This document shows positions 5,160 through 40,574 of a stretch of DNA of 64,000 nt, piece after piece (position 1 is the first letter of the stretch; each line of letters starts with the position of its first letter). The stretch covers positions 8,990,001-9,054,000 of the forward strand of contig NC_047083.1 in assembly GCF_902459465.1 (NCBI RefSeq), in the 5' to 3' direction. The translations under genes were made by a program, and so were the position numbers. The notes under the pieces were generated by a model. It was not told the DNA's origin, did no database searches, and worked only from the letters and a program-made list of their open reading frames with translations. The stretch comes from Asterias rubens. Lineage: Eukaryota.

Positions 5160-5355
5160 CATAGTACACAGTCAACCCTCCTACTGTCTGACCATTAAAT
5201 AGTGATAGATGTACGCATTAAGAATTCGGAGAGTGCATCTACAAAGTACACAGTCGACCCTCCTACTGTCTGACCATTCAATAGTGCATTAAGAAAACGG
5301 AAAAATGCATTTACAGAGTACACGGTCAACCCTCCTACTGTCTGACCATTCAACA
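5160..5355. repeat. Three copies of the same 70-bp minisatellite family
   Basis: tacacagtcaaccctcctactgtctgaccatt near 5165, 5248 and 5319. Confidence 0.85.
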
Positions 5356-6320
5356 TTTTAAATGATGCGTTAAGATATCAGAAAAATGCCTACGTACACT
5401 GTAGCACATAGAAAATTACCTCATACAATACATTACAATAACACAAAAGCTGACATTTTAATACATTTTATTCTACTGCACAAATAAAAAAACAAATAAA
5501 ATTTCATCAGCTGCCTAAGAAAGAAAAAACACAAGAAAAGTTCATGCAGGGATAAAAATTAAAACTAATATTTCTGCTACATTTTGTAACAATTGAAAGA
5601 GAAAAAAACATAAGCCTAAAAGCACCAATTTTACATACAATACACACCAAAAACTTATTTCATCGGTTTCTTTTACTAGAAAAAATTAAAATATGGTTTG
5701 CATTAATATTTAACAAATATTGCTTTGTTTCTTTAAGTTTAGTTTTACTTTAAGTAAGCATCACGCTCAGGAAATTTCACTGATGCAAAATTCTCTTTTT
5801 TTTTGTAAACATTGATACTTCTTTAACCATACATCTTTGTTATCTTTCTAACTTAATATCATAGTGGTTACTGTCAGCACAGGAAAAAAAAACACATTAA
5901 GTGTAAAATCCACCGCCCAAAAAACACCACCGACAACAAAATTTGTCCTTAAAAAATGATCAAAACAAGGCAGACTATAATATGCCCCTTCGGCTTGCTT
6001 TGCCGGCAGGATACACACATAATTTGACAGCTAAATACAATCTATCCATGAATTCTTAGATTTGCATTAATGAGCACAGTAACAAGGTTACTAACTAAAA
6101 TGTGATAAAATTTACTTTTTTGCCGGGCCTCTGTAAACGTCTTCTCCTCAGCAGCTTTCTTTCAACATTAATACTTCTCGTCATCAAGGAAAAATCAGGG
6201 CACCAGTCGCCAGCTGTTTACATAACATGGTAATTTATGCTGGTTACCAATTATGCTTAGCATTTGCTTTAACAAGACCAGAATTTAAATGAGAAAGAAT
6301 AACTTTTAAGGTTCAAATTA

Positions 6321-6950
6321 TTAGACTGGCCATCAAGTCATTTACTGTTCATTACTCCTTGTGTAAATGGATTTGGTTCTTGCATCGCATGGGTACATGT
6401 ATGTTATGAAACAGCTGTAGCAGACACTCTACAGACTCAATCAAGTCTAGGACTAGACTGGCCATCAAGTCATTTACTCCTTTTTTCTCCTTGTGTGTGT
6501 GTATTTAGTTATTGTACCACATGAGTATGCTGTGACTCAGTTAGCGGCAGACACTCTATCAACTGAATCAAGTCTAGGATTAGACTGGCCATCAAGCCAT
6601 TTACTCTTTTTTTTCTCCTTGTGTGTGTGTATTTAGTTATTGTACCACATGAGTATGCTGTGACTCACTTAGCGGCAGACACTCTATCAACTGAATCAAG
6701 TCTTGGATTAGACTGGCCATTAAGTCATTTACTGTTTATTTCTCCTTGTGTGTGGATTTAGTTCTTGTGTCGCATGAGGATGTTGTGACTCAGTTAGCGG
6801 CAGACACTCAATCGACTGAATCAAGTCTAGGATTAGACTGGCCATCAAGCCAATTCCGTTCATTTCTCCTTATGTTTGGATTTTGTTCTTGTAACACATG
6901 AGGATGCTGTGACTCAGTTAGTGGCATACACTATCGACCAAAGGTGTCCA
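6321..6950. repeat. Tandem repeat, unit about 128 bp, 5 copies
   Basis: ttagactggccatcaagtcatttact...gcagacactctatcaactgaatcaagtctagga units start near 6321, 6453, 6580, 6709 and 6833. Confidence 0.9.
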
Positions 6951-10000: not shown

Positions 10001-13000
10001 ACCGTCATTAATATCTGGGAGTTCAAACTCTGAGAAGTCCCACCACTGTAACCTGAAGGTGGTACTTCCAATATTGTTGGCCACAGCTGTCTCCCCGCGA
10101 CCGGCAAACGCACCTGAAAGAAAACCATTATTGATGTTTGTCTTACATCCCTAACGATGCTAAACGCAACAATATGCACCACCAAATGGTAGTTATATTT
10201 GACGAAATCTGTCATTCTTTGACTGAATTTGTTGCATTTAGCAGTCTTTTTGTTGTGTTGTTCGAGAGAAATAAAATAACAATAATGTTGGTGATCATTA
10301 TAGGAACAAATTTGATACACCTCAAAAAAAGTTTCAACCATTCAAAATCTGAAATAAGTAGAGAGTTAAACTTTTCGCAGGAACATTTCTTTCACTCGTC
10401 AATACTATCAGAGTGAGGCTAAGAGGTAGAAATAGTCTGGTACCAATAACAGTATGCTATGCATTAGTATTACTGGTATAAAGGGTGTGAGACTTACTGG
10501 CGATGGTTCTGTTGATAGCTGCATGGACTACAGGAGGGGGTGGATGGTATGTCTCGTCGAAAATACTGTTTCTTGGTTGGTGATGATGTGCTGAGAACTG
10601 GTTTCTCCTAAAGGCCACATACAAAAATATGATAAGACTTTAATGGGAAACTTTAGACTATCTGCAATTCACCAAGAGAGGGCGCTCTTCACCAGGTAAT
10701 GTCAACAACTTAGGAATAGGAGAAGCATGAGTGACGGTCACTGACAGCAAATACCTTGTGTTTTGTGTGTTTTTGATTTTGCATTTAGATTTAGCCAAAC
10801 TGTATTTTGTTTTTCATAACACAATGCCAGCATAAACCAAACTGTTCTGGAACAGGATGTACTGGACACGAGTTCCCCCAAGGATAAAAAGCGGTGTACA
10901 TGAGTTTTTGGGAGTGTTTCTTCTAGGGTAACTAGCAAAAATTCCAAAATGCTGACCTGCCAAAAATTTAGAAGAAATCTGAAGTTTAGTTGTATGACAA
11001 TGTATCTGATTTAATTGGACTTTTGGCTTCCGAGTATTTGTACTGTTCTTCTATGAGTATTGGTACTGTTCTTCTATTTAGAAAGGACACTAAGGCAATT
11101 TCTAATTGATAAAGGACACCACGTTTTGATTGAATATCATTGCTGGATCTTACCCAAGTTGAGAGCGTAGCGGTCCTTGTCGAGACTGCCTCAGAATTCT
11201 CCTAGGAACTCTGGCTGGCATGTCCATCCTCTCCGTTTCGTTCAGCTGCCGGGACGGGGCGTTCAAGAGAGCGACGTGAAGATGTCTCCGAGTATGGAGA
11301 GGGGCGACACGTCGCGCTCCGTACGCTACACCCGGAGGTCCTATGAAAATAAATACAAGAGCAATTAACAAGAAAGTTGGAGTACTGTTTTCACATTTTG
11401 GCCGGAGCTTCTGTCTGTCATTTATTTTTATTAGATAGAGTGCAGAAGAGTAATTGTTAATTATGTTGGTGAAAGGTTGGGATCAACATAACAACCCCTT
11501 CCCATCATAATGGATTTTCCAATCTGTAAATACTAGTCTATACCAACCTGTGGGCTGGGCGACGCCTTGTGATTCAGGTGGTCCGAGTTCGACATCCCCC
11601 TGGGGCAAGCGCTGCCGATTCGACCCATGGTGACTCCGCCACAAGTTGTAGCGACGATACCGGGAATACCCATCAAACTGAGTAACCGGATTCATCGGAT
11701 TTACAGTAGAGAGAGAGTCTGAGATTGGTTCGGCAAGGGTTTCCTCTCTTCCTTCTTGCATGTACGCCGGACCTCTTGAACCAATATCCTGGGAGGTTGG
11801 TGCGCGAGGTGCGTAACGTGGTCTGGTAACCGGTCTCGCATTGTGCATTGATAGGTCCATTCCCTGACTCGCTTGGAACCGTAACCTGAATGGGTTTTGG
11901 GAATCTCCTTCAGACATATTGGCGGAAAATCTAGCGTCCCGTCTGGCGAGATTTCTAGGTCGGTACTCATCCTGGGGATCGGAGCCCTCCTCCTCTTGGT
12001 GGTTAGCTATTTCAGATGTTTCAGAGCTTTGAAGCTGCTCAACATTCACAGGAGGTACATGTGCATTGACCTCACGAGGTGCTTCTACATTGTTCTTTTG
12101 CCGGGGTAGATTTCTTGGCGAGTTGGAGTCCGCGTTTGAGCGAGGTACATTACACCCCTCAGAGCTACCTCGAGCTACAGATAGATCTAAAGGGTTCAAC
12201 TCGGAACTAACTGGATTCCTGTTTTGGTTTGTAGATGCGTCGTAAGGCGGGATATTGTACGAGGTGCTGATACTAGTGACGGGATGCGACAATGTCCGCA
12301 AGGATGAAGAGCTAGGGGACGGCAGATTTAGTCCACTCGAATGCGAGGTGCTACTTATTGGGTGGGAGGCGCGACTCGCAGGTTGAGCTGTGCTAGCGGC
12401 AAGGTGGGAGCTCCTACTGACTGAGTCGGAGGTACTGTTCACTAAGTTTAAGGTACTAGTCATCGAGGTACTATTAACCGAGTGTGAGGTGCTATTCACC
12501 GAGTGTGGGGTACTATTTACAGAGTGCGTGGTACTCAACATAGAGGATATGGTTCTATTAGAAGCACTATTCAGTGAGGACGACGCTCTTGATTGAGGCG
12601 AGGCATCAGTATCTGACGTGCTGTCTGGAGGCGCCGTGAGGGGAATCGTTCCAAGATGGGCTGTGTAAGCACGAGGCTGCTCACGCATTACAACACCGCT
12701 CTGCTGGACGACAGCGGCCTGGGGACATGACAGAGTTTCTGAGAGGAGAGCCGGTTGCATGTCCGACTCCGAGTCTGTAGATGTTGTGACCAGACCTCTC
12801 TGGTTGGCAGATCCTCCACTTCTTGTTGGTTCTGAATCAGATCGAGAAGGGCGACTGGCCTGCGCTACCGCCACAGCCTCCGACGAGAGGCGAGTTGATC
12901 TTTGGTTTACATTGTTCAGTGTACGCTCATCGCTTGACGTTATTCGATGACAACTTGACGACGGGCCAACGTCTTGGAGACCACTTGACACTTCTGCGTC

Positions 13001-16000
13001 TGAAAAGGATAACCTCTGACGGCTTGTCCTGACCAATCTATTGCCTGTACTTGATGATGACCCTGCGGGACCTGACGATTGAATGGTAGGGTGTATTAGA
13101 TTGCTAGGACCTGCAGGTTGGTCTTGCTCAGTCATGTTCGGACAGTGACGCTTTGCTTCCGGTGAGTGGCAATCCTTTGTTGAGCCGTTTTGGCTCTCAC
13201 TATCCAGGACATGTTGTGAGCTTGTGGAGGGTGCAGTTGAATGCCTGCTCCCTGAGGCTAAATCAAGAGGTCTTGAATCAGACGTAAGAGCAGAGATTCC
13301 CTGATCATTGTCCGAGCTCACTGACACTGAAGCTTCTAGTTCCGGGCTTTCTTGATTTGAGGCTGGGGGTAGTTGTTGGAGCCTCCCTACATGTGGTAGC
13401 AGAGGCTGCCTTGCCTCATCAGAGTGCTCCTGAGGAACATTCGATGACGTTCTCGCCACTCTAATCTCATCTCCGCCTGTGACATCCATATTCACATACA
13501 TGGATGTAAAGTTCCCTGACTCCTCCTGTGAAGCACGAGTGCGACTCTCACCATGGCCCTGACCGTTTTCGGCGGAGGTTTCCAAGTCGGACCATTCTCC
13601 ATGCACTCTTCCCACATTGTCGCTGTGTATTCTTGCTTCCTCACTTCCATCACCCTGGTCTCTTATCTGAGAGCCAATCCCACTTCTGCTACTAGTTGCT
13701 TGGCGAGCTATACCATCTGCCTGATGCATTAAATATGGTTCATCTTCACCGTAATACATTCCTTGCGGTGGGACTCGATCATTCCGAGTACCTCTGTGGA
13801 ACCACGAGAAACTGTTTGAGAGGCTGCTCTCACGGTTGACTCTTCTTAATCCAAGAGCGGTCAGGGTTACAGCCGCAGCGTATTCCCTCGCCTCTTCGAG
13901 AGTCTCACTCTGAATCGGAGACATTGGTCTCTCTGGCTCCCGAGGCAGAGAAGAACCTTGGGACAGAGGGAGGCCCGAGGAAGAAGCTCTAGAGAGACAA
14001 GGGTCTAGGCGCATTGTTCTTGGGTATGGTGTTGTATTGTCAGAGACTCCATAAAGCCGATGCCTGCTTTCTCTGCTGTCGATCTGTTGTCTGCAAAATG
14101 AATAACGAAAACTGTCAATTAAAGGAATAAAAAGAGTGGTGACGAGTTCTTAATTAGGCGTTTTAAAATCGGCTGAGTCGTGGACAAGGGACTTCACTTG
14201 GAACAGTGTTCGTTTAACAACTTGGAATGCAGGCTTTGTGATTCACGCTGAATGAATTGCATACTTACTCAAAAGAGAACAATCAATTCTAGTGCTTTCT
14301 TTAAAAACTTTTATAGTCTTGGCATTGTTGAGGTTTCATTGTGAGAATGAACTTCTTTTCTCCAAAAAAGAAACTATTTTCTTTTCTCCAAAAGAAACAT
14401 CTTGTTGATTACCGCAGTGAAGTTGTTTATATCTTGTTGCGCTAACAAAACAAGATGGGATTGCAAGATGCAAATTGAACCATCTTGTTATCGATACAAC
14501 TGTCTTGTTTTCTCCTGCACAAGTCAATGCCACCAAACCGAGGCTGAAAGGGAAAATAGACTGGTCCCATTTGCTTGAATGAGAAACAGCATTCGAATAT
14601 CTACTGGGAACATTGGGTTTATCACTTACAGGTTTTCTGGCTCTGGTTCCTCATCAACAGGAGCATTCGCAATTCCAGTCAGGAGGTTTTGACCGAGCGG
14701 ACTGAACCTCACAAGTCTGCGTAGAACAAAAAAAAAACATACAGTTTATCAAATTTTTATCTGTGGTGAAGACGTTAAGGCATTGTAAACCTTTGGGTTT
14801 TTTAACCGTTCGACAGTTTTAATCTAAATGCCTCCTTCTTTTTGAAATGAAATTCAAACAGGTTAGTTTTATTGTATACACTCTACATCTTATAAGGATT
14901 AAAACAATCAAACGGTTCAAAAATCCAAGGTATACTCTGCCCAAAAGTATGATGATAATTATCAATTTATAGTTTTCCGTTAAACTTTCCTTGATGTGTA
15001 CATAATATTAATAATAGTGGCTTCTTAATAGCGGGCATATAGTGATAATAATAATAATAATATTGAAGTCTTATAATGCGCACGTATCTACCAAACAAGG
15101 TACTCAAGGCGCTGAGTATTTTTTATACAAACTTTCAGAAAGATAGGTTACTGCAGTGATGAATTTTGAGACCCTATTAGTTAGCACCATATAAGGGTTT
15201 ACAAGGTGCTACGGTGCATTGAGCAGTCACAGCCAGGAACACCGGGGCGAACCCCTTCTCTTTTCGATAAGTGCACTGGGTTCTTTTACATGCGTTACAC
15301 AACACACGGGACCAACGGCTGTCACTGAGAAACGCTCAAGGCGCTTCACATGTACTCAATTGTCATGCTAGTGAACAATTGTATAAAATGTTGCTATCTT
15401 ATGGAAATTTTGAAGTAAGGATTCCAAATTTAGAAGATCTGTATATATTTTAACCTGACTTTCTCTTGTGATGACGAGATCATGACTGACGCAAAGGGTA
15501 CTGGCTGCCGCCAGTCCCAGAGTAGAATTTGGTCATTGGTTGCAATTGCCAGAACCTGATCCCGTGGATGAAAGGACAGAGATGCTATCATGGAATGATT
15601 GTCTGACTGCCAAACTTCACTGCTACCCTGTGATAATGGGAAAAATAAACCAAGAGAATCAATACTCAAAAGTATATCAAGTTGGCAAAGTTGGTTCTTT
15701 CCCTGTCTTTCACCTCTGTGGACCACCGTTTCAAAACCACACCTCAGACTGGAACCTTGCATTTGATTTTGGGTTTTTTTTCTGATTGGGATTTTTTTTT
15801 CTAAAACAGTTCACTTTTAAGGCATCCTTGGTTCATAACCTGACATGTACAATAATAAAAACATCAATCGACAACTTCAAAAGAAAATTAAAACACACTA
15901 GTTCACTTATACTAAATACTTACATTGGGTTTAATTTAACTAGGGGCCTACAAGAAGTGCTCATTATAAATCCATATTATTATTATTATTACTAATTAGT

Positions 16001-17137: not shown

Positions 17138-18661
17138 CTTTGCTCTTTTGGTTCTTCCCAAATAGCTCAAAAATAGAGATATTTCAGTTACATTTGGGAG
17201 CGGATATGGAACGACTTTCCGGGGGCAGCTGCTGCTTTGACTACTTTTTGGGGACCATTATCATTTTGTATACCGCCCTCATGCGTTCTGTATATATAAG
17301 GGGCAAAGAAATATTTTTTGATACAAAAATAATGGTTGAGCGCGCCCTCACGTGGTCAAGATTACGGCGCATTAAAGTTTTGTCTATAAAGTTTTCCGCA
17401 AAATAAATATATATAATAGCAATCTCTTTTCAGGTCTTTATGCAGAAATCTTATTGTATTACTTTGTTCTTTACTATTACAGTTTAACTTTTAAAAGAAT
17501 TTTTGATTTTTTCATAGCATTTTTTTAATCCACCCGACGAGCGCGGGGGTTGGGTGGAGCTATCTCTTCCCACGCCCCTCTCTCTAAAAAACCCCGAAAC
17601 GAAACAAAAACAACAAACAAGAAAATTAGCCGTTAAAATGTGTGCCCCTTGTATCAGAAAATCTTGGACCCCCTGTAAACAAATAATTATTCATATTAAT
17701 TTTGACATTAATTTTGCATTGATTTAAATCAATCATGCATTGCTTGTTTGTATGAAAATGAAATGACCCAAAACGTGAGCAGACGATAACTTCCTTCTAA
17801 CACTAAAACGGGCATTTCAACCAAGTGAAGTGGTCTATACAGTAAATGAAAAAAACGTTGACTCCAACTACACAATATAAAATAAAATGATAACGCGCTT
17901 GCGTATCCCAAAACTTTTTTGCCTGTGAACTAGAATGTTGTTGATGGGGGCGCGCGTTGTGTGTAAAAAGAAGTTAGTTAAGTCATTGTTAGCTAGTTGT
18001 GTCTGTTTGGGCAAGTACGTTTCCGGACGACTTCTGAACTTTGTTTGCTGTTTTGAAAGAAAAAACTGTAAGTTGACATTGAAATGTATTACTCTCTAAA
18101 ACGCACCTCCGACAATCTTCAACAAAAATGATTTTCATGTATTTAGGGATGGCTGTAGTGTAGGCTCATCCATCAAACAGACTAATTATAAATTAATAAT
18201 AAGTTTAGACTTAGTTTTAGAGTGACCGATTTTATTTTTAGTTTGTCCCTTTTTCCACGTAACATTTTCCAGTTTGACACTGACAGGACACTGCACTGAC
18301 AATGACACTGACACCTGCCATATCATGACTGCTGACCTGCTGACAGTGACATGCTGTACATATTATAATTTCTGTTTGTTGAACTGCATTTCAACTTAAA
18401 ATATTGCCATTTTTTATTTGTTATTAAAATATTTGAGAATAAAAAATGGGGCTCATCTAGGTTCAGGCTGTTGAGCTTGATGGTAGAACTACGGGTTTCA
18501 ATATTCATACTTTATGAACTTTTTTTCCACTTGTTACAGGACATACTCTTCTCGATTTCAAACAAGCTTAGCTTTTGACAATCCAGCTGAAGTTTTTAAA
18601 TAGCTTAACTTTTGACAACCCAGTTGAAGTTTTGGCCAAACCGATTGCAGTTGTGTTCAAG
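17138..18661. promoter_or_regulatory. Divergent AMBRA1/PRDM9 promoter region
   Basis: The two start codons diverge 1.5 kb apart. CACGTG near 17349, a GC-rich box near 17530-17580, ETS-like TTCCGG near 18021 and a probable 5'UTR donor ACT|GTAAGT near 18067. Confidence 0.55.
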
Positions 18662-21600
18662 ATGGCCAGGCCAAAGAGACCAGATGATGGCATTGAACAG
18701 TTCTTCTCTGCCACTGAATTTCAAGAAATGTCCGACTATGAAAAGCTGAGGCTGAGAAATATGAAAGCCAACTATGAAATGATGGTTGAAATTGGTAAGC
18801 AGCATTGTTAATTAAAGGACAAATGATTAAAATTAAGGGTTAGGGCACAAATTTGGGTTGAAGCAAAACAAAACATTATTTCCAGCTAGATGAACAAAAT
18901 TATCTTTCAGCCACTAGCACTTACTTGGTTATTTTATTTATTCATTTTTTTGTGGGGTCTTATGCCATCATGATGTGCATAGAATCACCATAAAATAGGA
19001 TTGTCAGGAAACAGTTATATTCAACACTTTACTGACCTCAACATACTTTAGATCATGTACTAAGGTGAACATTATTTCTTGAAGGTCTTTGAAAATACAC
19101 TGTTGGTGGTTTAAGGTTTAATGGTTTATTTAAAGTCAACTGGAAGTGGTATTTTTTCAAAATAAAGCTTTTGTCACTTATGTGTTTTGATGAGTGGAAT
19201 GTGAATAAAACTGTTTGGGGGGCTGACTCCGCCTACCCCTTTTTTTGACGTCAATCGAGCAGACTTTGCCTGCAATGCGTATAGTAAACACACGTGCAAA
19301 GTACATGTACGGACCAAGTCGTGAGTTTGTACGTTTCAAAAAAGAAAAATTTTTCTTGTCCGGCAATGCCGACCAGGTGTATTGCTGCTGAATGCAGAAA
19401 AACACTTTTTGAAATGTACCAACTCACGCCTTGGACGTACATGTACTTTGCACGTGTGTTTACTATACGCATTGCAGGCAAAGTCTGCTCGATTGACGTC
19501 AAAAAAAGGGGTAGGCGGAGTCAGCCCCCCAAACAGTTTTATATATTTTTTAACATACAAATCGTGACAAACAATTACTAAACAAGTTGTTTTATTGTTC
19601 GTAAGCATATACTCTTATGTTTGAAAGAAAAATAATTCTATTTCCAGGTGACTTTAACCACCAGAACTTGAATTTGATGCTCTTAACCACTCGGCCACAA
19701 TACTCTACATTCTGAGTTTACAATTTTAAAAGACATTCAATTCACACAAACAAAAGATAATCAAACTTTAGGGTGTGCACGTATTTGTCATTGATGGAAA
19801 ACTTAATGCAAAACAAAATTCTCAAATTATAGTTAATCAGATTTTGTTATAGAAAAGGAGAAGACATCAGCATAGCAAACAGGTTTATTATTTAATTATC
19901 ATATTCCTTGTTTCTATTTCAGGTTTGACAATACCCAAACCAGAGTTTATGAATGGTCCATTTCGTAAGAGAAAACCTAAGTTTGTAGAGAGTGACAATG
20001 ATGATGAAGAGTGGAAACCTGGGTCATCTGCGGATAAAACAAACAGAAAAACAGGTCGGTTAATTGTTATATAATAATGACGTCTTCTATAGCGCCGGTA
20101 TCCACAAAAAAGTGCTCATGGTGCTTAGGCTATATGACAGAGAAAGTGGGCCAGTGCTTTCACTAAAAAAACTGTTGGTTCACATAATCTAAATTAGTAT
20201 ATTTTTCAACCTTTTGCTTTGCCTATTGTTGAGTGCCATGTGCTACTGCGTGGCAGGAGTGTGCGGTAAGAATCCACTAAATAAGTTGGTATTATTAGTT
20301 ACAGTAATCTTGGATTCATGTTATAAGGGTAGTGGAAGGCTGCTTGGGAAGTAAGGGACTTCAAAAACTGAGATTGGGCTTTGTGGTCTAAGCAAACAAA
20401 AATAAGAAAACCTATACCCATTTAACTGGCCTTACTTTTGCTGCTGAATGTACAACATTGAAAGTTTCTTGTGCAAAGTTTAACAAGGAGTAGATGTTCA
20501 CACGGATACTTTGTGAAGTTTGTGGTACTATTTTGACAAATGAGATGGTAAAACTCACTGATGTTTTTAACACTTCAATACTACACTTTTTCATACAACT
20601 ACTTTTAAATGAGATAAACACGGTTGAAAACCGGCCTGAGATTTCATTAAAACCCTATGGGTTCACACTTTAATCCAATTTAGTATATTATTTTTTTAGC
20701 TTTTTTTGCTTAGGCTTTTGTTGAATGCAATGTGACACTCTGTGGCAGAATTGTACGCTATAAGAAACCAATCACTTGAATTGATTTCTTTATGGTCTTT
20801 TCTCTAACTGTCTTGAAACATTTAGTTGCGGGATGAAACAATTTAAAATTTTATCTGCGTTTAGACATGTTTTCATCTGCCTGGTAAAAAAGGGGAGCTG
20901 TATTTTCTTCAAATATTCAACACAGTTACCATTCTTTCTTCTCCATGTAAATTTTTTTATCTATTAAACCTCTGAATAAGTTTGGCTTTTCATTCTTTGC
21001 TGCAGTTTATAAGAGAAAAAAGACATTCACAGTTCCACTTAAAGGTACCCAACAACAGTCCACTTCAGTGAACTTGATGGCAAAGGTAAATTCTAAATTA
21101 TTTCTTAAAGAAATTAGTAAAACAGATAAAAGTAATTATTGAATCAATGATGAGCAATGAGCATAACTTGTTTGTACAATTGGCAAAACACGAGAAAGTG
21201 AAGTTAAAAGAAGTTACCATAATATTGTAAATTTGCTTTCCACTTATCTCCCAAAACTCATGGGGGCGACAAATATAATCAGTTTTGTTTCATTGGAAAT
21301 ACTGAGGCTCACCAGTTTTTATTTTAATATTCAATTATTTTTTAAAATGCAGCAAGTAAAAAATAAACGCAGTCAAAGTTCAACCATTTAATAAAACTAT
21401 GCGCAAATTTTTCTGATTTTTTTACTCTAGGAAAAGTCAGACTTTTAGTATTAATAAGTCCTGAAAATATTTTACATACAGCCTATGTGTACATGTATGT
21501 CAGAGCTGTACTGGAAAAAAAAACTGTTCCTACTTTTTTTCTTGGACTAAATATCATGCCTGTTATTTGACGGTATTGAATTTTTTCCCCGTCTACTACC

Positions 21601-24600
21601 ATTTTGCAGGAAGTATCTAAGTTAAGTTATATAAGGCCTGAATGATATGCATCTTGTATTTTTGTTTGAGAAGAAAAGAACAAAGTGTCAGGAAATTTCA
21701 ATTGTAATTTTAATAAACATTTGTAAAATTATTTCTTCCTTGTCTAGACTTCCTCATCAAGTCACACCTCACCACCAGAGCAGCCAGAGCAGGAGGCAAA
21801 ACAACGAGAAGGTGAAGATAACTTTGATTTCCTTGGCCGTGTCACAATCAGTGACTCTGGAAAACTCATCCCATGTGGAACTCAAAATCCGGAACCTCCA
21901 AAAAGACAACCAGCTAAAAGAAAAAGAGGTACTCCCATAATTAGAAATATTTCTTTACATGCCATGAGTCAAAATTGTTTAATTTATTACTGTTTATTCT
22001 TGGTAAATTACTGTTTATTCCAAGGTGCTCGGCAAGAAAAAAAAACCTGACATGAATATAAAAATTGACAAACATAAACAATTTTTGTTTTATATTCAGG
22101 AATGCACTTTTCAGCCAATGTTTTGTTTAGTGTAATGCCAAAGAAATCTAAAACAAAAACTAAAAAAGTTGAACCTGTTCCTTTTTACTGTTATTACAAA
22201 GTTAATAAATAGAAAGTTAATTACAAAGTTAGTTACAAAGTTAATACAAAACTGCTAAAAACAACCCCCTAAAAAAACTAATTATTTTAGCATCACAAAC
22301 AAAAAAGAAAGAAAAGAGAAATCTGAGCCGGCCAGATATTGTAGAATAAGTCAGCTTAACTTAGGGCTTGCCACAAATTTGAGTTTAGAATATAGTTCTT
22401 TAAAAAATATAGCCATTGGTACAAATTAGTGTTAGCAAAACTATAATGGTTCCACAGTTATTAAATAAAAACAATATAATATTGTCAATAAGAACTGAAT
22501 CCCCCGAAAAAAATTCAGAAAGTTTTTCATTTGTTTTTAAATTTCGTAGATCAGTCTAACCTTTTTGTGTAACAGTTGCCCAAATGAGGAGACTAATAGT
22601 ACAAAATGTAAAATATTTATACAAGTTGCAGTCTTGAAAAAAAAAGGTTGGTCTAAAAATGTTTCTCCCATTTTCCACATCTTCAGTTGTTGACACGTCA
22701 CAGAGAAAAGAGCAACGTTATCCACGGCGTGCAGCAGCCAAGAAATGCTACAAGGACTTGGATGGACCTAACGATGACAGTTTTGTGTGTATGTAAAAAA
22801 GTGCTTATGTTAAAGCTTGAGGTTTACTGTTGTAAAACTTTCTAATAAAAGTTCCAGAGAAACCAGGGGTGAAAACTTACTATCAATTTGGATAGTAAAA
22901 AATAATATGGGATCATCACAAAATATGATTGATCATCTTTCTGGAATGTTCTTATTCTTTCATAAAAAAATTGTTTAAAAGTCATATATGACTTTTAAAA
23001 CTTTTGTTTATTTAGTATCTACTTAAAAAGATATGCTGTTTATATGGGGTTGGTTATTAAGACATTTTGCAATAGAATATAAAAAGAATATACAACGTGT
23101 ATATATATGAGTTTAATTATATCTTCTTTTGGAAAACAGATTGTGAAGACTGCCATGAGCTTTTTGAGAATAGCTGTCCTCAACACCCTCTGACCGTCAT
23201 CGAAAACACCCCAGTCACAAAAGGATGTAGAGATCATGCTAAGCGTAGTCTTCCAGATGGACTTATCGTCAAGGAAGCTGGTATCAAGAATGCTGGCCTA
23301 GGTGTTTGGGCTGAGAAGGCTTTCCCCAAAGGAGTGAGGTTTGGACATTATGGAGGTGAAATTGTTGGGGAAGAGGAAGGCAGAGAAAGTGGCTATGCTT
23401 GGGAGGTAAGTGGGTACCTAGCCTGTGAGGGCAGAGATGGTTCTTGTGATTGATTTATTAAACCGAGTAGTGCATTTGTAGTGTATCAGGGAGCTGAGAT
23501 GGTTTAAGGAATGATTTAAGGCCCAGGGAACAGGGGTAATAGTAAATATAATAGATATTACATATATGGGGTATAAATGTTGGAAGTGCTTCAACAGGGG
23601 TGAAAAGTGCGATATGAAAACTGGCGATTATTATTATTTGGACTTTGAAAAACTGAGATTGGCTTTCTTTCCTACTCCAAGTTTACCAATGGAATATGTC
23701 CACAGCAATTCTTTGTAGTACTTTGACGTAGTGACTCGAATTAACCTGATGTTTTTAATACTAATGCTCTGCTTTTCCAGACAACTAATTTTAAAAGGTG
23801 TTAATAAAAACAGCAGACAACAAATAAAATCATCTGCATAAACTTGGAGAGTTCAATAATAATTTTTAAATTTGTTGTTGTTGCATAACCAACCTTTGTT
23901 TCATATCACAACAGATCTTTGATCACAATGGCAAAAGCCATTACATTGACGGCAAGAACCCCAGCAAAGGCAATTGGATGCGATACGTGAACTGTGCATG
24001 CAATGAGGCAGAACAGAACCTTGTTGCCTACCAGTACTGTGGTCAGATCTACTATAGGAGTTTTAAGACGATCTCACCAGGTCAGGAGCTACTAGTTTTC
24101 TATGGTGAAGAATACGCTTCTGAGCTTGGGATTGTGATGACAGAAAATGATGGCAAACAATGTGCCAAAAGTAAGTTTAAATTCCCCTCAATGTGAACCC
24201 AAAACAACTTTTTGTACTAAAAAAAATGTTGTTTTATAAAGTTGCAGGAACTTCTTCAATAAATGTTATTGGCATTTTGAAGGAACCACCTGAATGTGGC
24301 AAACCTCAGTTGACTTGCATAATGTAATTATTATGGCTGTAAAATAAAAAAAATTAAGTTGCTTGAAAAATAGGAGGTGATCTTGTTAGCAAACTGCCAG
24401 AATTCTCTTTGATTTTTAACATCTAAAAAGAAAGCTAAAAAACTTACAAGTTTTACTTTTATTCGGGCTTGAATAATCTTAATGGTTTATAAATAATTTA
24501 CTTGAGACAAAAAGGTGTACATTGGTGAATGATTGGAAGGTTTCCCCTTGCTCAGTTTGCTTTCAATGTTTCCTAAAACTCTCTGTATAGTGCACTAATT

Positions 24601-26046
24601 GCAATACATTTATTCCAAAAAGGGAATCATGTGAAATCATATCCAAGAGTTCTACACCTTAAAAAAAGATGTAGAAGACAAGAAGGGGGGGGGGAATAAA
24701 AAATTAATACAATTTTTAATTTAAAAGATGTTAAATGATTATTACTTTAACCCGTTTTCTTTTATACAGATGACCTGCACCCATGTACTCGATGTGACAA
24801 GATCTACACAGATTTTAAGTATCTAGCCGGGCACATGAAGTACTCCCATGGATCATCTACTGAGTGGTACGACTACTTGAAATCAACAAAACACTCTTTC
24901 AACATCACAGCATGTAATCGCAAAGTTGCTTCTCAAGTACAGAGTTCATTCAGAAACATGAAAGTACCCTTTGGCTGTAACACAAATACAAAATTCATGA
25001 AAATAAGCTCAAATGTAACTGAATTGCAACAGTTTGCTTGCAGTCAGTGTAGCACAAAGTTCAACTCAATAAATGACTTGGAAGCTCATGGATTAACGCA
25101 CATCAACGAAGATGGTGAGAAAAGGGCAAGTAGGAATTTAAGAAAGGGACGATGTAAATCATCACAACAAATCGGGAATGTTGACCTCAGAAGGGAACAA
25201 GGAAAGGGCAATTCTAAACTACCTACCGAAATAGATGATGGTGTTTCAAGGAATGCCTCCAACAATTACAAAAGCATAACAAATAATTCAAATGTTTTGA
25301 AAAAAGATACAAAAGCAAAACAAAGCTCTAAAAACAATTTCATATGTGACAATGAATTTGCACTTAGTACCAATGAAGTATGTGAACAAAATACATGGAG
25401 TGGTAACTTTAAAACACATCAAAGAACTCACACAGGAGAGAAACCATTCGCTTGTAACCAGTGTGAGTCAAGATTTGCCCAAAGGTGTGACTTGAAAAAA
25501 CATCAAAGAACTCACACAGGAGAGAAACCATTCGCTTGTAACCAGTGTGAGTACAGATGTACAAAGAAGGGTAACTTGAAAACACATCAAAGAACTCACA
25601 CAGGAGAGAAACCATTCGCTTGTAACCAGTGTGAGTACAGATGTGCACGGAGGCATCACTTGGAAACACATCAAAGAACTCACACAGGAGAGAAACCATT
25701 CGCTTGTAACCAGTGTGAGTCAAGATTTGCCCAAAGGTGTGACTTGAAAAAACATCAAAGAACTCACACAGGAGAGAAACCATTCGCTTGTAACCAGTGT
25801 GAGTACAGATGTACACAGAGGGATCACTTGAAAATGCATCAAAGAACTCACACAGGAGAGAAACCATTCGCTTGTAACCAGTGTGAGTACAGATGTGCAC
25901 GGAGGCATCACTTGAAAACACATCAAAGAACTCACACAGGAGAGAAACCATTCGCTTGTAACCAGTGTGAGTATAGATGTACAGAGAAGGGTAACTTGAA
26001 AACACATAAAAGAACTCATCACACAGGAGAGAAACCATTCATCTGA
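18662..26046 (+). CDS. PRDM9: PRDM9 (Meisetz) histone-lysine methyltransferase: ancestral KRAB, SSXRD, zinc knuckle, PR/SET, post-SET finger and C2H2 array; 8 coding exons, 808 aa
   Basis: Exons 18662-18794, 19923-20054, 21006-21085, 21748-21928, 22687-22788, 23140-23405, 23915-24170, 24770-26046; total 2427 nt in phase. [44 protein letters not shown] (human [40 protein letters not shown]). [31 protein letters not shown]. Knuckle [25 protein letters not shown]...RFGHYGG...NWMRYVNCA...[15 protein letters not shown]...[10 protein letters not shown]. Post-[13 protein letters not shown]...HMKYSH. Confidence 0.93.
19134..19653. mobile_element. TTAA-flanked Kolobok-like non-autonomous transposon in PRDM9 intron 1
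   Basis: ttaa|AGTCAACTGGAA ... TTCCAGGTGACT|ttaa (11/12 TIR match); long internal inverted repeat (about 19205-19340 vs 19410-19541) around a spacer. Confidence 0.85.
25429..26016 (+). repeat. Coding minisatellite: 7 x 84-bp C2H2 zinc-finger units of PRDM9
   Basis: Units start at 25429, 25513, 25597, 25681, 25765, 25849 and 25933 with near-identical cacacaggagagaaaccattcgcttgtaaccagtgtgag. Helices: [49 protein letters not shown]. Confidence 0.97.
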
Positions 26047-27119
26047 AATAAACGTGCAATGAGCAAGTACATCAGTAAAAGTACAATTATTGTTACATGT
26101 ATAAGGATTATTTTTGTTATTATAAAAAAAGTATAAATGTATTTTCTATCTATTTTTAAGGAAGTGTTTTTATAACTGATTTTTTTTCCCGGTAAAGACA
26201 GTTGGGTTGCAGTTAAATTGTTTTCCCTGAAATTTAATAACTATGCCTATTTAAAATCAATGAACTGATGGGACTGACTAAACAACAAAGCAAATTTAAT
26301 TGCTTTTATACATTTTTTAGAGGGTTTGGGGTACACAAAGAATTTATAAAAAAAAATTAAAAACAAAAAATTTACAAAAAAGTGTTTACCAATTTGAATT
26401 CAACTTGCAATTCACTTCAATGTATTATAAACATCACATTTAAAACATGAACAATGCCTCCCAGTGTGCATCAATGATCAATACACATTTTTTTTAAATA
26501 TTCACTCCAAATCGCTCCAAGTGTACAAAACAGTGTTCATTTTATCCTGTTGTCTAGTATTTATTGTTTCTCCTTCGTATTGTTGGATGGAGATGTGTAA
26601 TTTACAAAAATTGAAAATATATTGGTTTTGAATGTTTCAATGTTAACCTAAATAAAAACATTGTCCCTTGTTCATGTTGAAAACATATCCCACACTTTTT
26701 TAAATCATAAATTTTAAATTTATTTTCATCCTTCAATCTTATTGTCCCTACCAAACATAATTACTCTAAAAACGGTGAGAAAAAAGACTACACCCAATGA
26801 CCTTTAACCTGCTTGATCTGGTGTCCACTGTACTCGTGTGGCATTTAATGCATCAGTTAGCCTGTCCACAGACTATTCTCATTCAGTCAGGATCACAGCG
26901 TACTGAACAATATTGTTACATATTGACTGCCATAAATCGCCTGTGAACTTCTTTTTCCTTACACAATTACACAAGAGAAGACCACCTCAATTGGAGATGA
27001 AACTTTGCCCGATTTGGTAATTATGTTTTAACAATGTATGTTGAGGAAATTATGTTTTTGTCCGAGTTCCGTAAAAAATAAAGATTTTAGTAAATGTAAA
27101 ATTACTAATTTTACATTCA

Positions 27120-27645
27120 ATAACATGGCGACGTCTGATGAATGGGTTGTATTTCTTTTTATTTTAGTTTCTAACTAAAAACACTTTTATGAAAAGTATA
27201 TGTCGTTCAGTTTTGATTGTTTAATAATCTTTAATAATATTATTGGGTAATCTTCCGGTCGTCGCCACCAATTTATCCGCCGTTAATTAACTCCAAAACC
27301 ACTGAATTTTTTTCTTACCTTAGAAGAAGGGTTAACGCATATATACATCCAGAAAAAAAAGAGAGAAAAAAAACGTAACAGTTTGTAAACAAAGGTCAAA
27401 ATTGGGCCGTTTTCGACTCCCAGTGACATCGAACTCCGCCATGTTTATGTTGTTTGTGTGTGTGAGTGTTGTTGTTCAACGCTCCAATCAGTCGGTCAGC
27501 GTCCATGCGCAATGGAAAAAATCGCTAGGACTGATTCATTTCCGAAATGGGTACACTGAAATTATTTTGGGAAGGGAGGAGGGGAGGGAGGGAGGACGGA
27601 GGGAAATTCGAACAAACCACAAAATAACCACGTGCGTTTATGAAG
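27120..27645 (+). promoter_or_regulatory. ATG13 promoter and probable non-coding first exon
   Basis: YY1-like AACATGGCG (27122) and CGCCATGTT (about 27437), ETS CTTCCGG (about 27251), E-box CACGTG 27629-27634 and donor GAAG|GTAATG at 27645/27646. Confidence 0.5.
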
Positions 27646-29019
27646 GTAATGTTATGTTATAAGAATAGGCTGTTATGGTTTCAATACAATGACCGTCATT
27701 GCATAATAAGCAGGTTGAACTAGTCTACGGGCCTGTACGGCGGGGGTATATCTTATTTTAGCCACCCAGCAAAAATAAGGGGAAATGAAGTCCAACATCC
27801 ATGTAATGTATAATAATCCCTTTAAATTGCAGTTGGATGATATGGACATTTTGCCTTATTTGAACTAATGTAACAATTTCTATACCCTGCCACCACTAAT
27901 TTAATATTACTCACACAAAATTCCAAATGAGATTCCTTTTCTTTGTTGTTTGTAAAATGAGTGAAAATGTGACAGTAACTATTAATTATTCATCCCCAGC
28001 TAGACTAGATTACACTTGGTATACGATCACTGTATGAACGTATTCTGTGTGAAGACTACATTCGTACTTTGTTCTGTCTCTAGAGTAGTGTACTGACTGT
28101 TGTAGTTGTACCTTTGGTTTATTATTTTTTTTATAGCTCAATATTGCGTGGTTAAACTGCTGTCTAGTCCAAGCAAGCTAGCCCACTTTGCTGGGCTGTT
28201 AGTGTTATGGCTCTCTTTTATCATCGGTATTTTGTGCTTATTAATATTATTAATCATGGCGCCTATTGATGTATGTTGATTGATAAGAGTAAGACCGATG
28301 AATCGATGATGAAATAGAGCCAAATAATCGTAGCAGTCCGACAAGGTCCCTTGCCCACCACACAAGCACAAGTGGAGATAACAACTTGTTAGTTGCGATA
28401 ACGTAACTCTTCGGGAGGAGTTATATAACTAACATACAACTAACATAGGCCTAATTGTAAATATCTTGTATGTAGACCTAACTGTAAATATCTAAGGGAT
28501 TGAGTTCGAATAAAAAATACAATAATAGAAAGTAATAAGATGTTGAGAATAAACAGATTGCTTTTTGATTAATTGTTTTTATATACAAATTTTATGGTGA
28601 ATTTGAAACAAAATGAAGCCATACACATTTCTTTCTTCATGGAATTAGGCCGAGCCAAACAAAAATAAAGGGTACATTTTAGTTTAGTTCATTACGAAAG
28701 TTTTGGATGTTTTAGCATTTTAACCAGCAATCTGCATTTTTGCTACTTCCAATTCCAGCTGTAAATATGGTGTTCGCTTGTTTGTATTTAAATTTTACAT
28801 AATTTTATTGCATCACTATTTAAGATCATTTCAGTTAGAACAAATGTTTTTGACTTTTTAAACAAAACTTCAAGTTTATAGAAGTGCACTGCATGTGAAA
28901 GGCAGAATTTGACAGTTATTTGAATAAATTCAACAGTTATTCAAAATGCATTTCATTGTCTTCTAACAATTATAAAGCCATTGTGTAAAAGTACGGGCAG
29001 GCATTGTGTAGTGGGAAAC

Positions 29020-36000: not shown

Positions 36001-38180
36001 GTCTAGCATCAAAGATAAATCAAGTTCCTCAGATCAGGTAAGTGTCCCCTTAAAGTTGTCTACATTTTAAGCATTTCTTGTATTCCCTACCTACTCATGG
36101 TCTTATTTTTCAGGAAAGTTTTGGAGGTAGATGAGTAATATTTTTCCTTTGAAAATAACGTTGCCAAAACCCTGACTTGTCAAAGGAAATACAACAATAT
36201 TTTAACTGTTGTATCTACTGTCTTTATGTCAATGCATTTTTACTATTGTATCTACTGTCTTTATATCAATGCATTTTTACTGTTGTATCTACTGTCTTTA
36301 TATCAATGCATTTTTACTGTTGTATCTACTGTCTTAGTGTCTTTATATTAATGCATTTTTACTGTTGTATCTACTGTCTTTATGTCAATGCATTTTTACT
36401 GATGTATATACTGTCTTTATATCAATGCATTTTTACTGTTGTATCTACTGTCTTTATATCAATGCATTTTTACTGATGTATATACTGTCTTTATATCAAT
36501 GCATTTTTACTGATGTATATACTGTCTTTATATTTGCATTTTTACTATTAGAGAAGTCCTGCATTAGGTCTTGTGTTTTCATTTTTTTTTTCGCGGGGGG
36601 GGGGGGGGGGGGGGGGGGGGTTGTGGTATTTCCTTACTTTTACCAGTTGTTAGCTTTTAAATCATTGTGTATAATGAAGAAAACAAAATTAGGCCAAATT
36701 ATTTCGTTATGAGTTTTTTTACATCTTATGGAATGGGCTCAATATAAATCAATAAATTATTATTGTTGTTATTGTTTGTGACAGACGTCGTCAGATCAGC
36801 AAGACCCACAAGCCTCTTCATCATCGCAACACTCTAAGGAATCTTCACAGAGCCAACACTCTGTAGCGGAAGACTTTGTCATGGTAGAATTTGTGAGTAA
36901 TCATTAATTATGCTCCAAAATGTACAGCATTTAAGGAAATAGCTATATTACAAAAAGACATAAGGCTGGGCTATACTTCTTGGGAATTGCAAAAGAGAAG
37001 CCAGCTTCCTTAAATCACAATTTGGAAAATGTTTCATAACTGATTGTTTGCCTCACATAAGTCGCTTCAAATTTCCATACTTGTTGAAGGACTTTAACTG
37101 ACAATGGTTATAAGTTATTGTTAAAATCTGTTTTTAACATTGAAATGTGTTACAATCAAATGTGCAATATAAATGAATTAGTTATAAAAGTAAGAGTATA
37201 GATAAACATTCTGTCAAAGCAGGTTTCCTTCTTTTTACATCACTAAAAAGAAGATTAGACTGGTCTTCTGTCTTGTTTTATAGTAACCACTATGTGGCAG
37301 CCAGGGGTTAAAGGCAGTGGACACTATAAGTAATTACAAAAAATAATTGTTAGCATAAAATCTTACTTGGCTTCGAGCAATGGGGAGAGGTTGATAGTAC
37401 AAAACATTGTGAGAAACGGCTCCCCCTGAAGTAATTTAGTTTTCGAGAAAGAAGTAATTTTCCACGAATTTGATTTCGAGACCTCAGATTTAGAATTTGA
37501 GGTCTCGAAATCAAGCATCTGAGAGCACACAACTTCGTGTTTTTTCTTTCATTATAAACCTCGCAACTTTGACGACCAATTGAGCTCAAATTTTCACAGG
37601 TTTGTTATTTTATGCATATGTTGAGATACACCAAGTGAGAAGACTGATCTTTGACAATTACCAATAGTGTCCAGTGTTTGCCATTCAATTGAGTTTTGAT
37701 GACTTATTCCTTTCAGAATCCTGCCTTTGCCAAACCAGAGAGTAACAGCGACGTCGTCAGTTTTTATCGTCAGTTCCAAATGGCGCCCCCATTGGCCATG
37801 TTTGACAACCAGCCAACCCTTGAAGAAACACTAGTGAGAAGAATCTGAAATTTTAATTTAGTCTTTATTAAAGACACTTTGGCAATTGATGTATATTTCT
37901 ATGTTCATTAGGTTCATATGAGAATTTGATGTACTTTTATCTTTTTATCTTCTCCATTTTTTGAGGTTTTGAGGAAATAAATATAGAAAAATAAATAGGA
38001 TTAAAACAATTAAACGGTTCGAAAAACAAAATGTATATTCAAAACATTAACTTCATTTTTTGTCCCTGTTTTTTTTTTCAGGAAGTGCTACCCACACAAC
38101 TTGCCAAATTTGAGGAAACTCAGGTTGACTTTGACAATTTTGTCCAGTCACTTCAACGAGATAGTGAAGAAAGCGACTAA
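30014..38180 (+). CDS. ATG13: Autophagy-related protein 13 (HORMA domain, LIR, C-terminal ULK1-binding motif); 12 coding exons, 475 aa
   Basis: Exons 30014-30139, 30851-30931, 31167-31286, 31773-32004, 32389-32482, 33779-33892, 34614-34760, 35070-35154, 35933-36037, 36785-36892, 37717-37833, 38082-38180; total 1428 nt in phase. Motifs: KDLNKFIKFLVFKSVQVIVQSR, GTDWFNLAI, VYNRLGLLLKSLICVSRVTPAYR, SQDLCATSFSTSPP, LIR EDFVMVEF, C-terminal DFDNFVQSL. A probable non-coding exon 1 ends at 27645 (AG|GTAATG). Confidence 0.96.
31499..31890 (+). repeat. 196-bp tandem duplication of an ATG13 splice acceptor plus 117 nt of exon
   Basis: Copy 1 at 31499-31694 and copy 2 from 31695; both contain ttttgaaactctag|GGAGACAAGATGGTC. 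Confidence 0.95.
32505..32754. mobile_element. MITE family C (GGGCCAATTTCATAGAGCTGCTTAAGCA termini)
   Basis: ccaggggccaatttcatagagctgcttaagca ... tgcttaagcagctcaatgaaattgggccctgg; relatives at about 62960-63200, 35605-35800, 49090-49280, 8380-8570 and 8867-9010. Confidence 0.8.
32885..33012. repeat. Three tandem copies of a 43-bp unit
   Basis: aaatcgtatagtatcgcatcttattatcatcttaactgtgtca x3. Confidence 0.85.
33048..33426. mobile_element. Kolobok-like MITE family A (AGGCAGTGGACACTATTGGTAAT termini)
   Basis: ttaa|aggcagtggacactattggtaatt ... aattaccaatagtgtccactgact|ttaa. Confidence 0.85.
34019..34406. mobile_element. Kolobok-like MITE family A, nested in a SINE
   Basis: Same termini in the opposite internal orientation; it interrupts the SINE core gtccttaa|...|gcaagacact. 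Confidence 0.8.
36200..36545. repeat. Minisatellite, 37-bp unit, about 9 copies
   Basis: atgcatttttactgttgtatctactgtctttatatca repeated in an ATG13 intron. Confidence 0.9.
37312..37676. mobile_element. Kolobok-like MITE family A
   Basis: ttaa|aggcagtggacactataagtaatt ... aattaccaatagtgtccagtg; right end slightly eroded. Confidence 0.8.
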
Positions 38181-39499: not shown

Positions 39500-40003
39500 G
39501 TTCTAACTGTTTGACTATTCAATATCATCCACTGTTGTTTTGGATGCATCAGAACAGTACACAGTCAACCCTCCTACTGTCTGACCATTCATTATCACCC
39601 ACTTTTGTTTATAATGCATCTACACAGTACACAGTCAACCCTCCTACTGTCTGACCATTCATTTTCATCCACTGTCATTTTGGATGCATCAGAACAGCCA
39701 ACTCTCCAACTGTCCAATAGTTCATTATCATTCACTGTTGTTGTGGATGAATCTGCACAGTACACAGTCAACCCCCCTACTGTCTGACCATTCATTATCA
39801 CCCACTGTTGTTGTGGATGAATCTGCACAGTACACAGTCAACCCTCCTACGGTCTGACCATTCATTATCACCCACTGTTGTTGTGGATGAATCTGCACAG
39901 TACACAGTCAACCCTCCTACTGTCTGACCATTCATTATCATTCACTGTTGTTGTGGATGAATCTGCACAGTACACAGTCAACCTTCCAACCGTCTAACCA
40001 TTC
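39500..40003. repeat. Minisatellite, 70-bp unit, about 7 copies
   Basis: tacacagtcaaccctcctactgtctgaccattcattatc starts at 39558, 39628, 39761, 39831, 39901 and 39971, plus one degenerate unit. Confidence 0.9.
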
Positions 40004-40574
40004 AAAAAAAAAATCACTCTGAGGCTTATTGTAAATTTCCAATTGATTTTTAATTGTTCTAGAGCACACCTGTGATGACCAATGTTAATAGCATTCTTAG
40101 TTGAACTTCACTTGATATACAAAGAACATCATGCACATGAGCTAATGCTTCAACTTTTTAATTTTAACAAAGTGTTAACATTTTAATTAATGTTCAAAGT
40201 TAATCACTGTTTTGTCTGATGACAATTTTGTACTGTGTGTATATATTATTACATTGATGGAAGTGAATAAAAATGTTGAACAAATAATTACAAAATAATG
40301 ATTTCCCAGTATGTTTGCTTTTTCTTTTTATGATTGTTCCTGAGCGGGTTGGAACTCAAGATGCTGGGTTCAACATTCTATCTTGTATTTTATGCTAGTT
40401 CGTCGGGAGGCTGTGTATTTGTTTATATTTCAACCTTTTTACAAATAATACATATATATACATATATACATAAATTCTTCTTTTTCCCCGTTTCTTCTTA
40501 GGAAGTGCTACCCACACAACTTGGTAAATTCGTAGAGAACTTTGCAAAAAATTTAAAAGGCAATTTTTCATTAA

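Follow-up and report, generated by a model that had tools for sequence, protein, structure and literature searches.

The window, by which we mean the whole 64,000-nucleotide stretch of Asterias rubens DNA that was analysed, carries on its plus strand a PRDM9 gene of eight exons (Table 1), and the stretch shown here is the C-terminal DNA-binding finger array that ends this complete PRDM9 orthologue. The spliced frame is 2427 nt long and encodes 808 amino acids, with AG/GT at all exon borders. Along the encoded protein, an ancestral KRAB domain is followed by an SSXRD domain, a PR/SET domain with three catalytic tyrosines, two lone fingers and seven tandem C2H2 fingers. All seven tandem fingers are encoded by one exon, the terminal exon 8, where the array lies inside an open reading frame of 431 codons (24751-26043, plus strand). 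Scans of the window for Rfam families and tRNA genes gave no match.

Table 1 Features of the PRDM9 locus, with positions counted from the first base of the window.
Feature	Positions	Strand	Content and basis
Exon 1	18662-18794	+	Start codon and first half of ancestral (SSX/PRDM9-type) KRAB-related domain; 100% match to P0001; borders and phase verified
Exon 2	19923-20054	+	Remainder of KRAB-related region and acidic DEEW motif; P0001 mapping, mouse PRDM9 BLASTP, profile-profile alignment
Exon 3	21006-21085	+	Linker; P0001 mapping, splice borders
Exon 4	21748-21928	+	Linker; P0001 mapping, splice borders
Exon 5	22687-22788	+	SSXRD-like motif (RYPRRA...); BLASTP and hhalign (probability 99.85) against vertebrate PRDM9 SSXRD
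Exon 6	23140-23405	+	Pre-SET zinc knuckle and first half of PR/SET; Tyr aligning to Y276; Pfam PRDM2_PR, E 5.5e-7
Exon 7	23915-24170	+	Second half of PR/SET; Tyr aligning to Y341 and Y357; Pfam PRDM2_PR, E 4e-33, and SET, E 2e-9
Exon 8, unique part	24770-25401	+	Post-SET lone finger (24778-24849), second lone finger (25033-25101), low-complexity linker; ORF and Pfam zf-C2H2
Degenerate half unit	25402-25431	+	5' edge of array, lacking the Cys pair; TRF array start
Seven C2H2 finger units (coding minisatellite)	25432-26019	+	Exactly 84 bp each, cut at TGEKP linker; order A-B-C-A-D-C'-B'
Extra His codon, truncated eighth linker (TGEKPFI) and TGA stop	26020-26046	+	His codon 26020-26022; linker and stop 26023-26046
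Intron of the RefSeq model	25115-28083	+	Donor G|GTGAGA after 25114, acceptor AG|AGTAG before 28084; removes the whole array

The identity of the gene was established by several comparisons. A protein search returned the A. rubens protein annotated as 'histone-lysine N-methyltransferase PRDM9-like' (P0001, 499 aa), and when this protein was mapped back, 498 of its 499 residues were identical to those encoded by the window. The family-named database matches of P0001 were all called PRDM9 or PRDM7. In BLASTP, P0001 was colinear with mouse PRDM9 (E 1e-70) over the KRAB-related region, SSXRD, the zinc knuckle, PR/SET and the post-SET finger; the alignment covered mouse residues 25-84, the KRAB region, to which exon 1 aligns, and at the other end the post-SET finger of exon 8 was paired with that of mouse PRDM9. 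The Pfam models of KRAB (PF01352) and SSXRD (PF09514) gave no match on the sea star sequence, and for this reason pairwise and profile-profile alignments were used instead. When the N-termini of eight echinoderm proteins were compared with those of eight vertebrate proteins by hhalign, the two profiles aligned with a probability of 99.85 and an E value of 1e-30 over 189 columns that include both KRAB and SSXRD, exon 1 again being aligned. The SSXRD motif, encoded by exon 5 and lying between KRAB and SET, was thus found by BLASTP as well as by hhalign.

For both SET exons, a search of the PDB ranked PRDM9 structures above PRDM14, PRDM11, PRDM2 and every other PRDM. The best matches of exon 6 were the PRDM9 structures 4c1q, 6nm4 and 4ijd at an E value of about 3e-19 (3.4e-19), with PRDM11 as the next family at 2e-9, and those of exon 7 were PRDM9 structures at 3.5e-23. 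The three catalytic tyrosines, which Baker et al. 2017 (PMC5519329) take as a functional criterion for PRDM9, are kept in the motifs FGHYGG, QIYYRS and LVFYGE, opposite FGPYEG, KIFYRT and LVWYGD of the mouse protein, the shared patterns being FGxYxG, IxYR and VxYG; their numbering as Y276, Y341 and Y357 was mapped by motif, via an isoform with an offset of +4. A genome search found one other close locus (85%), a paralogue described below, and the next best reached only 45%.

The finger array is a coding minisatellite. At 25402-26040, TRF reported a period of 84 (7.6 copies, 88% matches, score 967) and also a period of 252 (2.5 copies, 94% matches, score 1108). A preliminary description of this DNA had given seven 84-bp units in a pattern A-B-C-A-D-C'-B' consistent with a 252-bp higher-order duplication, and cutting at the TGEKP linker indeed gave seven units of exactly 84 bp in this order. 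Fingers 1 and 4 are identical in DNA and fingers 3 and 6 are one base apart (GAA or AAA, giving E or K at helix position +5), again as described; fingers 2 and 7 differ by four bases. The residues at positions -1, 2, 3 and 6 of the seven successive fingers, QCDK, KGNT, RHHT, QCDK, QDHM, RHHT and EGNT, also agreed with those given before. Multi-unit blocks of the array have been duplicated recently, and the degenerate half unit at its 5' edge carries helix residues that match the units of its own array. The Pfam model zf-H2C2_2 matched seven stretches of the array (E 7e-59). An AF2 model built from a 32-row alignment contained seven canonical beta-beta-alpha fingers with a mean pLDDT of 96.2 and resembled solved poly-finger arrays, including those of PRDM9, CTCF and ZFP568.

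The framework codons are nearly identical among the units, and amino-acid change clusters at positions -1, 2, 3 and 6, which contact the DNA. Only 17 of the 84 nucleotide columns vary, 15 of them within a block of 11 codons (codons 13-23), and in the other two the differences are confined to the last unit; the framework of units 1-6 contains no synonymous difference at all. The preliminary description had the linker and Cys codons identical save for one TAC/TAT difference and the variation confined to the recognition helix. The near-identity stood, but the last unit also has CAA>AAA (Q>K) and CAC>CAT outside the helix, so that the confinement, although it holds for 15 of the 17 columns, was somewhat overstated. 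It could not be upheld that the variation is limited to the four contact positions, because residues also differ at -5 (S/Y), at the position of the structural Phe (F/C), at -2 (A/T), at +1 (R/K) and at +5 (K/E): the contact positions hold 55% of the amino-acid diversity among units and the remaining 45% lies elsewhere. Under the textbook recognition code, the fingers are predicted, with low reliability, to read the 21-nt motif 5'-nAC nGG nGA kCA nGG nAk kCA-3'. A genome-wide count of this motif was rejected: a match to all 21 nucleotides of the degenerate motif should turn up about 0.4 times by chance, and readings from the recognition code are not dependable enough.

To place these values among the zinc-finger arrays of the same genome, we used the Baker et al. 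2017 measure, which Rudler et al. 2026 also apply, namely the share of among-finger amino-acid diversity that falls at positions -1, 2, 3 and 6. The controls were 27 other A. rubens arrays with at least five fingers each, picked by best match rather than at random. The contact-position share was 0.546 for the window array and 0.532 for the paralogue, compared with a mean of 0.289 and a maximum of 0.386 for the 27 controls (range 0.21-0.39), so both PRDM9 arrays are outliers against these non-randomly chosen C2H2 arrays of the species. The nucleotide identity of the framework was 0.989 in the window array, whereas the controls had a mean of 0.782 and a maximum of 0.914 (range 0.51-0.91). The suggestion that a homogenised framework with diversified contacts marks this array as PRDM9, and that its contact-site diversity should exceed that of ordinary zinc-finger arrays, was therefore borne out, and the signature belongs to a full orthologue. 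Crude Nei-Gojobori pN/pS values, which are pairwise counts on the six unique units and not a site-model test, exceeded 1 at the contact codons only, where the value was 1.61; the remaining codons of the variable block gave 0.54 and the framework 0.22-0.32.

The units of an array are also alike in a derived state that they have in common. Cys stands where a structural Phe is usual, and a Tyr precedes it by two residues, in 5 of the 7 window fingers and in all 7 fingers of the paralogue. This state was present in 12 of the 14 units of both PRDM9 arrays but in only 5 of 382 other sampled A. rubens fingers, and its presence in nearly all units, rare as it is elsewhere, is as concerted evolution predicts. 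In their shifted aromatic residue these fingers may be akin to the 'aromatic swap' fingers known from ZFY. A homogenised framework does not by itself point to PRDM9, as the genome contains other homogenised arrays that lack PR/SET; the array at C23:714604-715574, for example, reached 86% matches in TRF but had a contact share of only 0.31.

The close relative found by the genome search, which was run with the array DNA and a SET exon, lies on contig C8. It has all eight exons, and its catalytic-tyrosine sites are identical to those of the window gene. The duplicated block corresponds to approximately 17766-26149 of the window, and the introns of the two copies are 73-80% identical. Between the paralogues, exons 1-7 gave a dN of 0.025 and a dS of 0.237, indicating purifying selection on both copies, and the unique part of exon 8 gave a dN of 0.158 and a dS of 0.258. 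The C8 array consists of a half unit and seven units (7.6 copies in TRF) with a framework identity of 0.951. Its contact quartets, EGKT, VSSK, EGKT, VSST, SGVT, QGKR and QGTK, include none that occurs in the window array, and the fingers of the two arrays do not correspond to one another position by position.

The same two loci bear on the possibility that the number and order of units in the window array are an assembly artefact, produced by collapsed or mis-joined repeats. Assembly is difficult for tandem 84-bp repeats in which 51 bases are identical from unit to unit. However, a layout of 7.6 copies recurs at two independent loci whose helix codons differ, the frame is kept exactly, and the best-matching sequencing runs contained 0.77 of the words sampled from the stretch. 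We consider such an artefact very improbable.

Each array contains near-identical pairs of units (0-1 differences), whereas the closest pair between the arrays is five sites apart. The half unit of the C8 array has helix residues that match the C8 units and not the window units, as the half unit of the window array matches its own. Internal duplicates and own-array half units are the marks expected of a within-array turnover that would have continued since the duplication. In their framework, on the other hand, the two arrays have an identical consensus: no locus-specific fixed difference was found there, against 2.2-2.6 synonymous differences expected (P approximately 0.07-0.11). Either chance or exchange between the loci could account for this identity, and, as the result is marginal, we do not claim interlocus gene conversion.

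In the public annotation, both A. rubens RefSeq proteins, P0001 and the paralogue model P0122, are without finger arrays. Splicing exons 1-7 to 24770-25114 and then to 28084 onward reproduced the annotated 499-aa P0001 exactly, and P0122 passes from exon 7 to an exon 22 kb downstream, in which it ends, so that exon 8 is skipped. The two models may represent genuine isoforms without fingers, or they may derive from RNA of tissues other than gonad. No public protein containing the array was found by the protein searches and the exact look-up: an exact-protein look-up of the 403-aa ORF returned no record, and a protein search with the array alone gave, at best, matches of about 59% identity to unrelated zinc-finger genes and no Asterias allele. 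A metagenome scan with a 34-nt framework pattern gave 0 matches. The annotated models, the exact junction 25114>28084 and the failure to find the array in public proteins are what one would expect if the finger-less proteins were the chief products and the array a little-used or decaying 3' end, uniform because it was duplicated recently and variable in its helices because constraint was relaxed.

We judge this account improbable. Both arrays are open over 588 bp with all Cys and His ligands intact, despite an intron identity of 73-80% and a dS of 0.24 between the copies. The framework pN/pS of 0.2-0.3 also speaks against it, and a pN/pS above 1 at the contact codons does not fit simple decay. 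In addition, the orthologues of Patiria, Lytechinus and Diadema are annotated with their arrays. From these intact frames and ligands in two copies, the selection pattern and the annotated arrays of the orthologues, we infer that the array is included in the mRNA and probably belongs to the main product. An AATAAA lies at 26047-26052, directly 3' of the array's stop codon, and is a weak further hint of array inclusion. Because the public annotation omits both arrays, a survey based on annotated proteins would wrongly count A. rubens among the species without a complete PRDM9.

On balance, we think it probable that the window contains a complete PRDM9 whose array is homogenised by exchange of units, whose contact residues are under diversifying selection and which most likely specifies hotspots. 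Unequal exchange and gene conversion between units would homogenise the framework and reshuffle the fingers, while diversifying selection would keep altering the DNA specificity. Most likely the protein acts as its vertebrate counterpart does, binding its motif during meiotic prophase and depositing H3K4me3 and H3K36me3. Such marking would set double-strand-break hotspots that erode over time, and this erosion would in turn give a Red Queen turnover of the array; the second full-length paralogue probably does likewise at other sites. This mechanism, with unit exchange and diversifying selection acting on a hotspot-specifying PRDM9, is one that we infer from the vertebrate analogy. The preliminary description further predicted that the array would be polymorphic in the population. 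A gene that may read these marks was also looked for. On contig C16, a zf-CW exon is followed by a PWWP exon that scores below the Pfam cut-off and was found by reading the locus, this locus being absent from the results of a PWWP family search of the genome; the arrangement suggests that the A. rubens genome contains a ZCWPW-type reader gene.

A true PRDM9-family gene could also use its fast fingers in another role, such as germline transcription, chromatin control or an arms race with transposons or satellites, and place no hotspots. Transposon-targeting zinc-finger genes, for example KRAB zinc-finger genes, likewise combine rapid contact-site change with a homogenised framework. Mobile elements lie close to the locus, with a MITE family in intron 1, and no recombination data for A. 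rubens were found in the literature searched. Furthermore, it is unusual for a dosage-sensitive hotspot gene to be present in two full-length copies at once, as discussed by Rudler et al. 2026 (bioRxiv 10.64898/2026.09.07.749791). However, the four domains together with the three catalytic tyrosines form the combination tied to hotspot-directing PRDM9 (Baker et al. 2017, PMC5519329), a ZCWPW-type reader gene appears to be present, and the contact share lies above those of all 27 sampled ordinary arrays. A role of this kind, without hotspot placement, seems to us unlikely, though it deserves to be taken seriously.

If the window gene does specify hotspots, the paralogue gives room for a further, tentative reading, in which two co-active PRDM9 genes on different chromosomes of A. 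rubens would direct recombination with non-overlapping specificities, their framework being kept identical by exchange between the loci. We regard this as possible but rather doubtful. If true, the multi-paralogue state of cnidarians would have a counterpart in a deuterostome invertebrate. Whether PRDM9-directed recombination with self-destroying hotspots predates the vertebrates is an actively studied question. Echinoderms are the closest large invertebrate group to the chordates and their gametes are easily obtained, and the window locus and its paralogue offer two concrete, apparently intact arrays for asking it.

Similar arrays were seen in other species. We compared the PRDM9-like proteins of Patiria, Lytechinus pictus, L. 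variegatus, Diadema, Strongylocentrotus, two crinoids, a sea cucumber, a mussel and a nemertean, and in each of them the array was homogenised, with a framework and contact sets not shared with the others, the contact shares being 0.31-0.64. The two Lytechinus species differ completely at the contact positions, and the Diadema array has a three-unit higher-order repeat like the 252-bp one in A. rubens. L. variegatus and Lineus have two such PRDM9-like genes each. The model of a brittle star (Amphiura) had only three fingers in register and a contact share of 0.15, and the annotated Acanthaster array is truncated.

In earlier work, Oliver et al. 2009 (PMC2779102) described concerted evolution and positive selection at positions -1, 3 and 6 in the Prdm9 of Nematostella, Lottia and Capitella; sea urchin Prdm9 was mentioned there only for its germline transcript, and no echinoderm array was analysed. 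Thomas et al. 2009 reported that the remainder of the PRDM9 protein is conserved in echinoderms. An analysis of a sea star PRDM9 or of an echinoderm array was not found in the literature searched. With its concerted fingers and its excess of contact-site change, the A. rubens array is a further case of the pattern already described in these other invertebrates.

Compared with mammalian PRDM9, the A. rubens gene has the same order of domains, namely the KRAB-related domain, SSXRD, zinc knuckle, PR/SET, post-SET finger and last-exon array, as well as the three catalytic tyrosines, 84-bp units, a near-identical framework and variable positions -1, 2, 3 and 6. It differs in having only seven fingers, in having mostly Cys for the structural Phe (with the Tyr two residues earlier), in the extra lone finger before the array and in the presence of two full-length copies. 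In addition, its protein is not recognised by the Pfam models of KRAB and SSXRD. The ordinary C2H2 arrays of A. rubens, including the one at C23:714604-715574, resemble the PRDM9 arrays in the 84-bp period, the TGEKP linkers and a partial homogenisation, but they are without PR/SET or KRAB, and their framework identity and contact share are below those of both PRDM9 arrays.

The closest parallel to the paired genes is in cnidarians, whose genomes contain several full-length PRDM9 paralogues; according to Rudler et al. 2026, no other group had been seen to have such functional-looking copies side by side. A. rubens is like them in that its genome contains a second, recently duplicated full-length copy, and in that both copies have the four domains, the catalytic tyrosines and diverse contacts. 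It is unlike them in being a deuterostome and in that both of its copies have the same number of fingers and identical framework DNA. The pair of full-length PRDM9 paralogues in a deuterostome is the freshest element of our finding.

A second full-length PRDM9 gene was found in the A. rubens genome, on a contig (C8) other than that of the window, and all eight exons were present in this paralogue, with dN 0.025 and dS 0.237 against the window gene. Its array consists of a half unit and seven fingers. The framework DNA of the two arrays is identical, and no quartet of contact residues (−1/2/3/6) is common to both. Between the SET domain and the array, the linker evolves fast (dN/dS ~0.6), and a 12-codon deletion in the C8 paralogue destroys the counterpart of the second lone finger that precedes the window array.

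Of the 14 PRDM9 fingers (window 25432-26019 and L002:1501-2088, the C8 array), 12 carry Cys (C-x2-C-x-Y-x-C) where the C2H2 fold has its structural Phe, a state seen in only 5 of the 382 other A. rubens fingers sampled. Despite this substitution, canonical fingers are still predicted by AF2. The contig of the window also has a large ZNF cluster that includes another minisatellite-like 84-bp finger array. The contact-position diversity share of this array, 0.31, is in line with that of ordinary arrays.

Both RefSeq models of the A. rubens PRDM9-like proteins leave out the finger arrays. Splicing 25114 to 28084 yields exactly P0001, the model of the window gene, and the terminal exon of P0122, the model of the C8 paralogue, corresponds to a locus (L057, C8:12038135-12038200) lying 22 kb past its own array. 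In protein-based surveys, A. rubens would be scored as a species without a complete PRDM9.

On contig C16, exons that encode the beginning of a PWWP domain lie less than 900 bp after a zf-CW exon. The architecture of this locus is of the ZCWPW type, which makes it a candidate reader of PRDM9 histone marks.

Positions of features in the window and at other A. rubens loci (G000, genome; C, contigs; L, fetched loci)
Feature	Position	Remarks
72-bp repeat, non-coding tandem array	window 5215-5353	
128 bp x 4.8, non-coding tandem array	window 6320-6932	
Intronless Ser-rich open frame	window 11483-14014 (−)	843 aa
Perfect inverted repeat, 107 nt	window 19205-19311 + 19436-19542	spacer 124 nt; intron 1 of window PRDM9 gene
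Second lone finger (FACSQC...HGLTH)	window 25033-25101	before array
Stretch spliced out in P0001, includes the array	window 25115-28083	
37 bp x 9.2, non-coding tandem array	window 36199-36546	
70 bp x 7.2, non-coding tandem array	window 39506-40004	
61 bp x 14.3, non-coding tandem array	window 52067-52936	94% matches
Second full-length PRDM9 gene	G000:C8:12004151-12015109	L002, L014, L023, L024
Other 84-bp minisatellite-like finger array	L055:2605-3575 (G000:C23:714604-715574)	11.6 copies, 86% matches
zf-CW exon, then PWWP-start exons	L062:474-1554 (G000:C16:4458973-4460053)	zf-CW E 4e-13

Elsewhere in the window, the intron 1 inverted repeat belongs to a MITE-like family of ~300 bp, for which a first look at the genome gave at least 1724 candidates (93-94% identity). 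The Ser-rich open frame sits in a GC-rich island (GC 0.51 vs ~0.37 around it), and neither a Pfam family nor a usable ESM Atlas match was found for it. On visual inspection of the TRF output, the 72-bp repeat seems to contain the 70-bp consensus again.

Two PRDM9-like genes with differing arrays were also observed in Lytechinus variegatus (P0129/P0141) and, likewise, in Lineus longissimus (P0143/P0144), and the array of a Diadema PRDM9-like protein (P0130) is a three-unit higher-order repeat, with QCNT, RFIT and QSDT occurring twice in this order.
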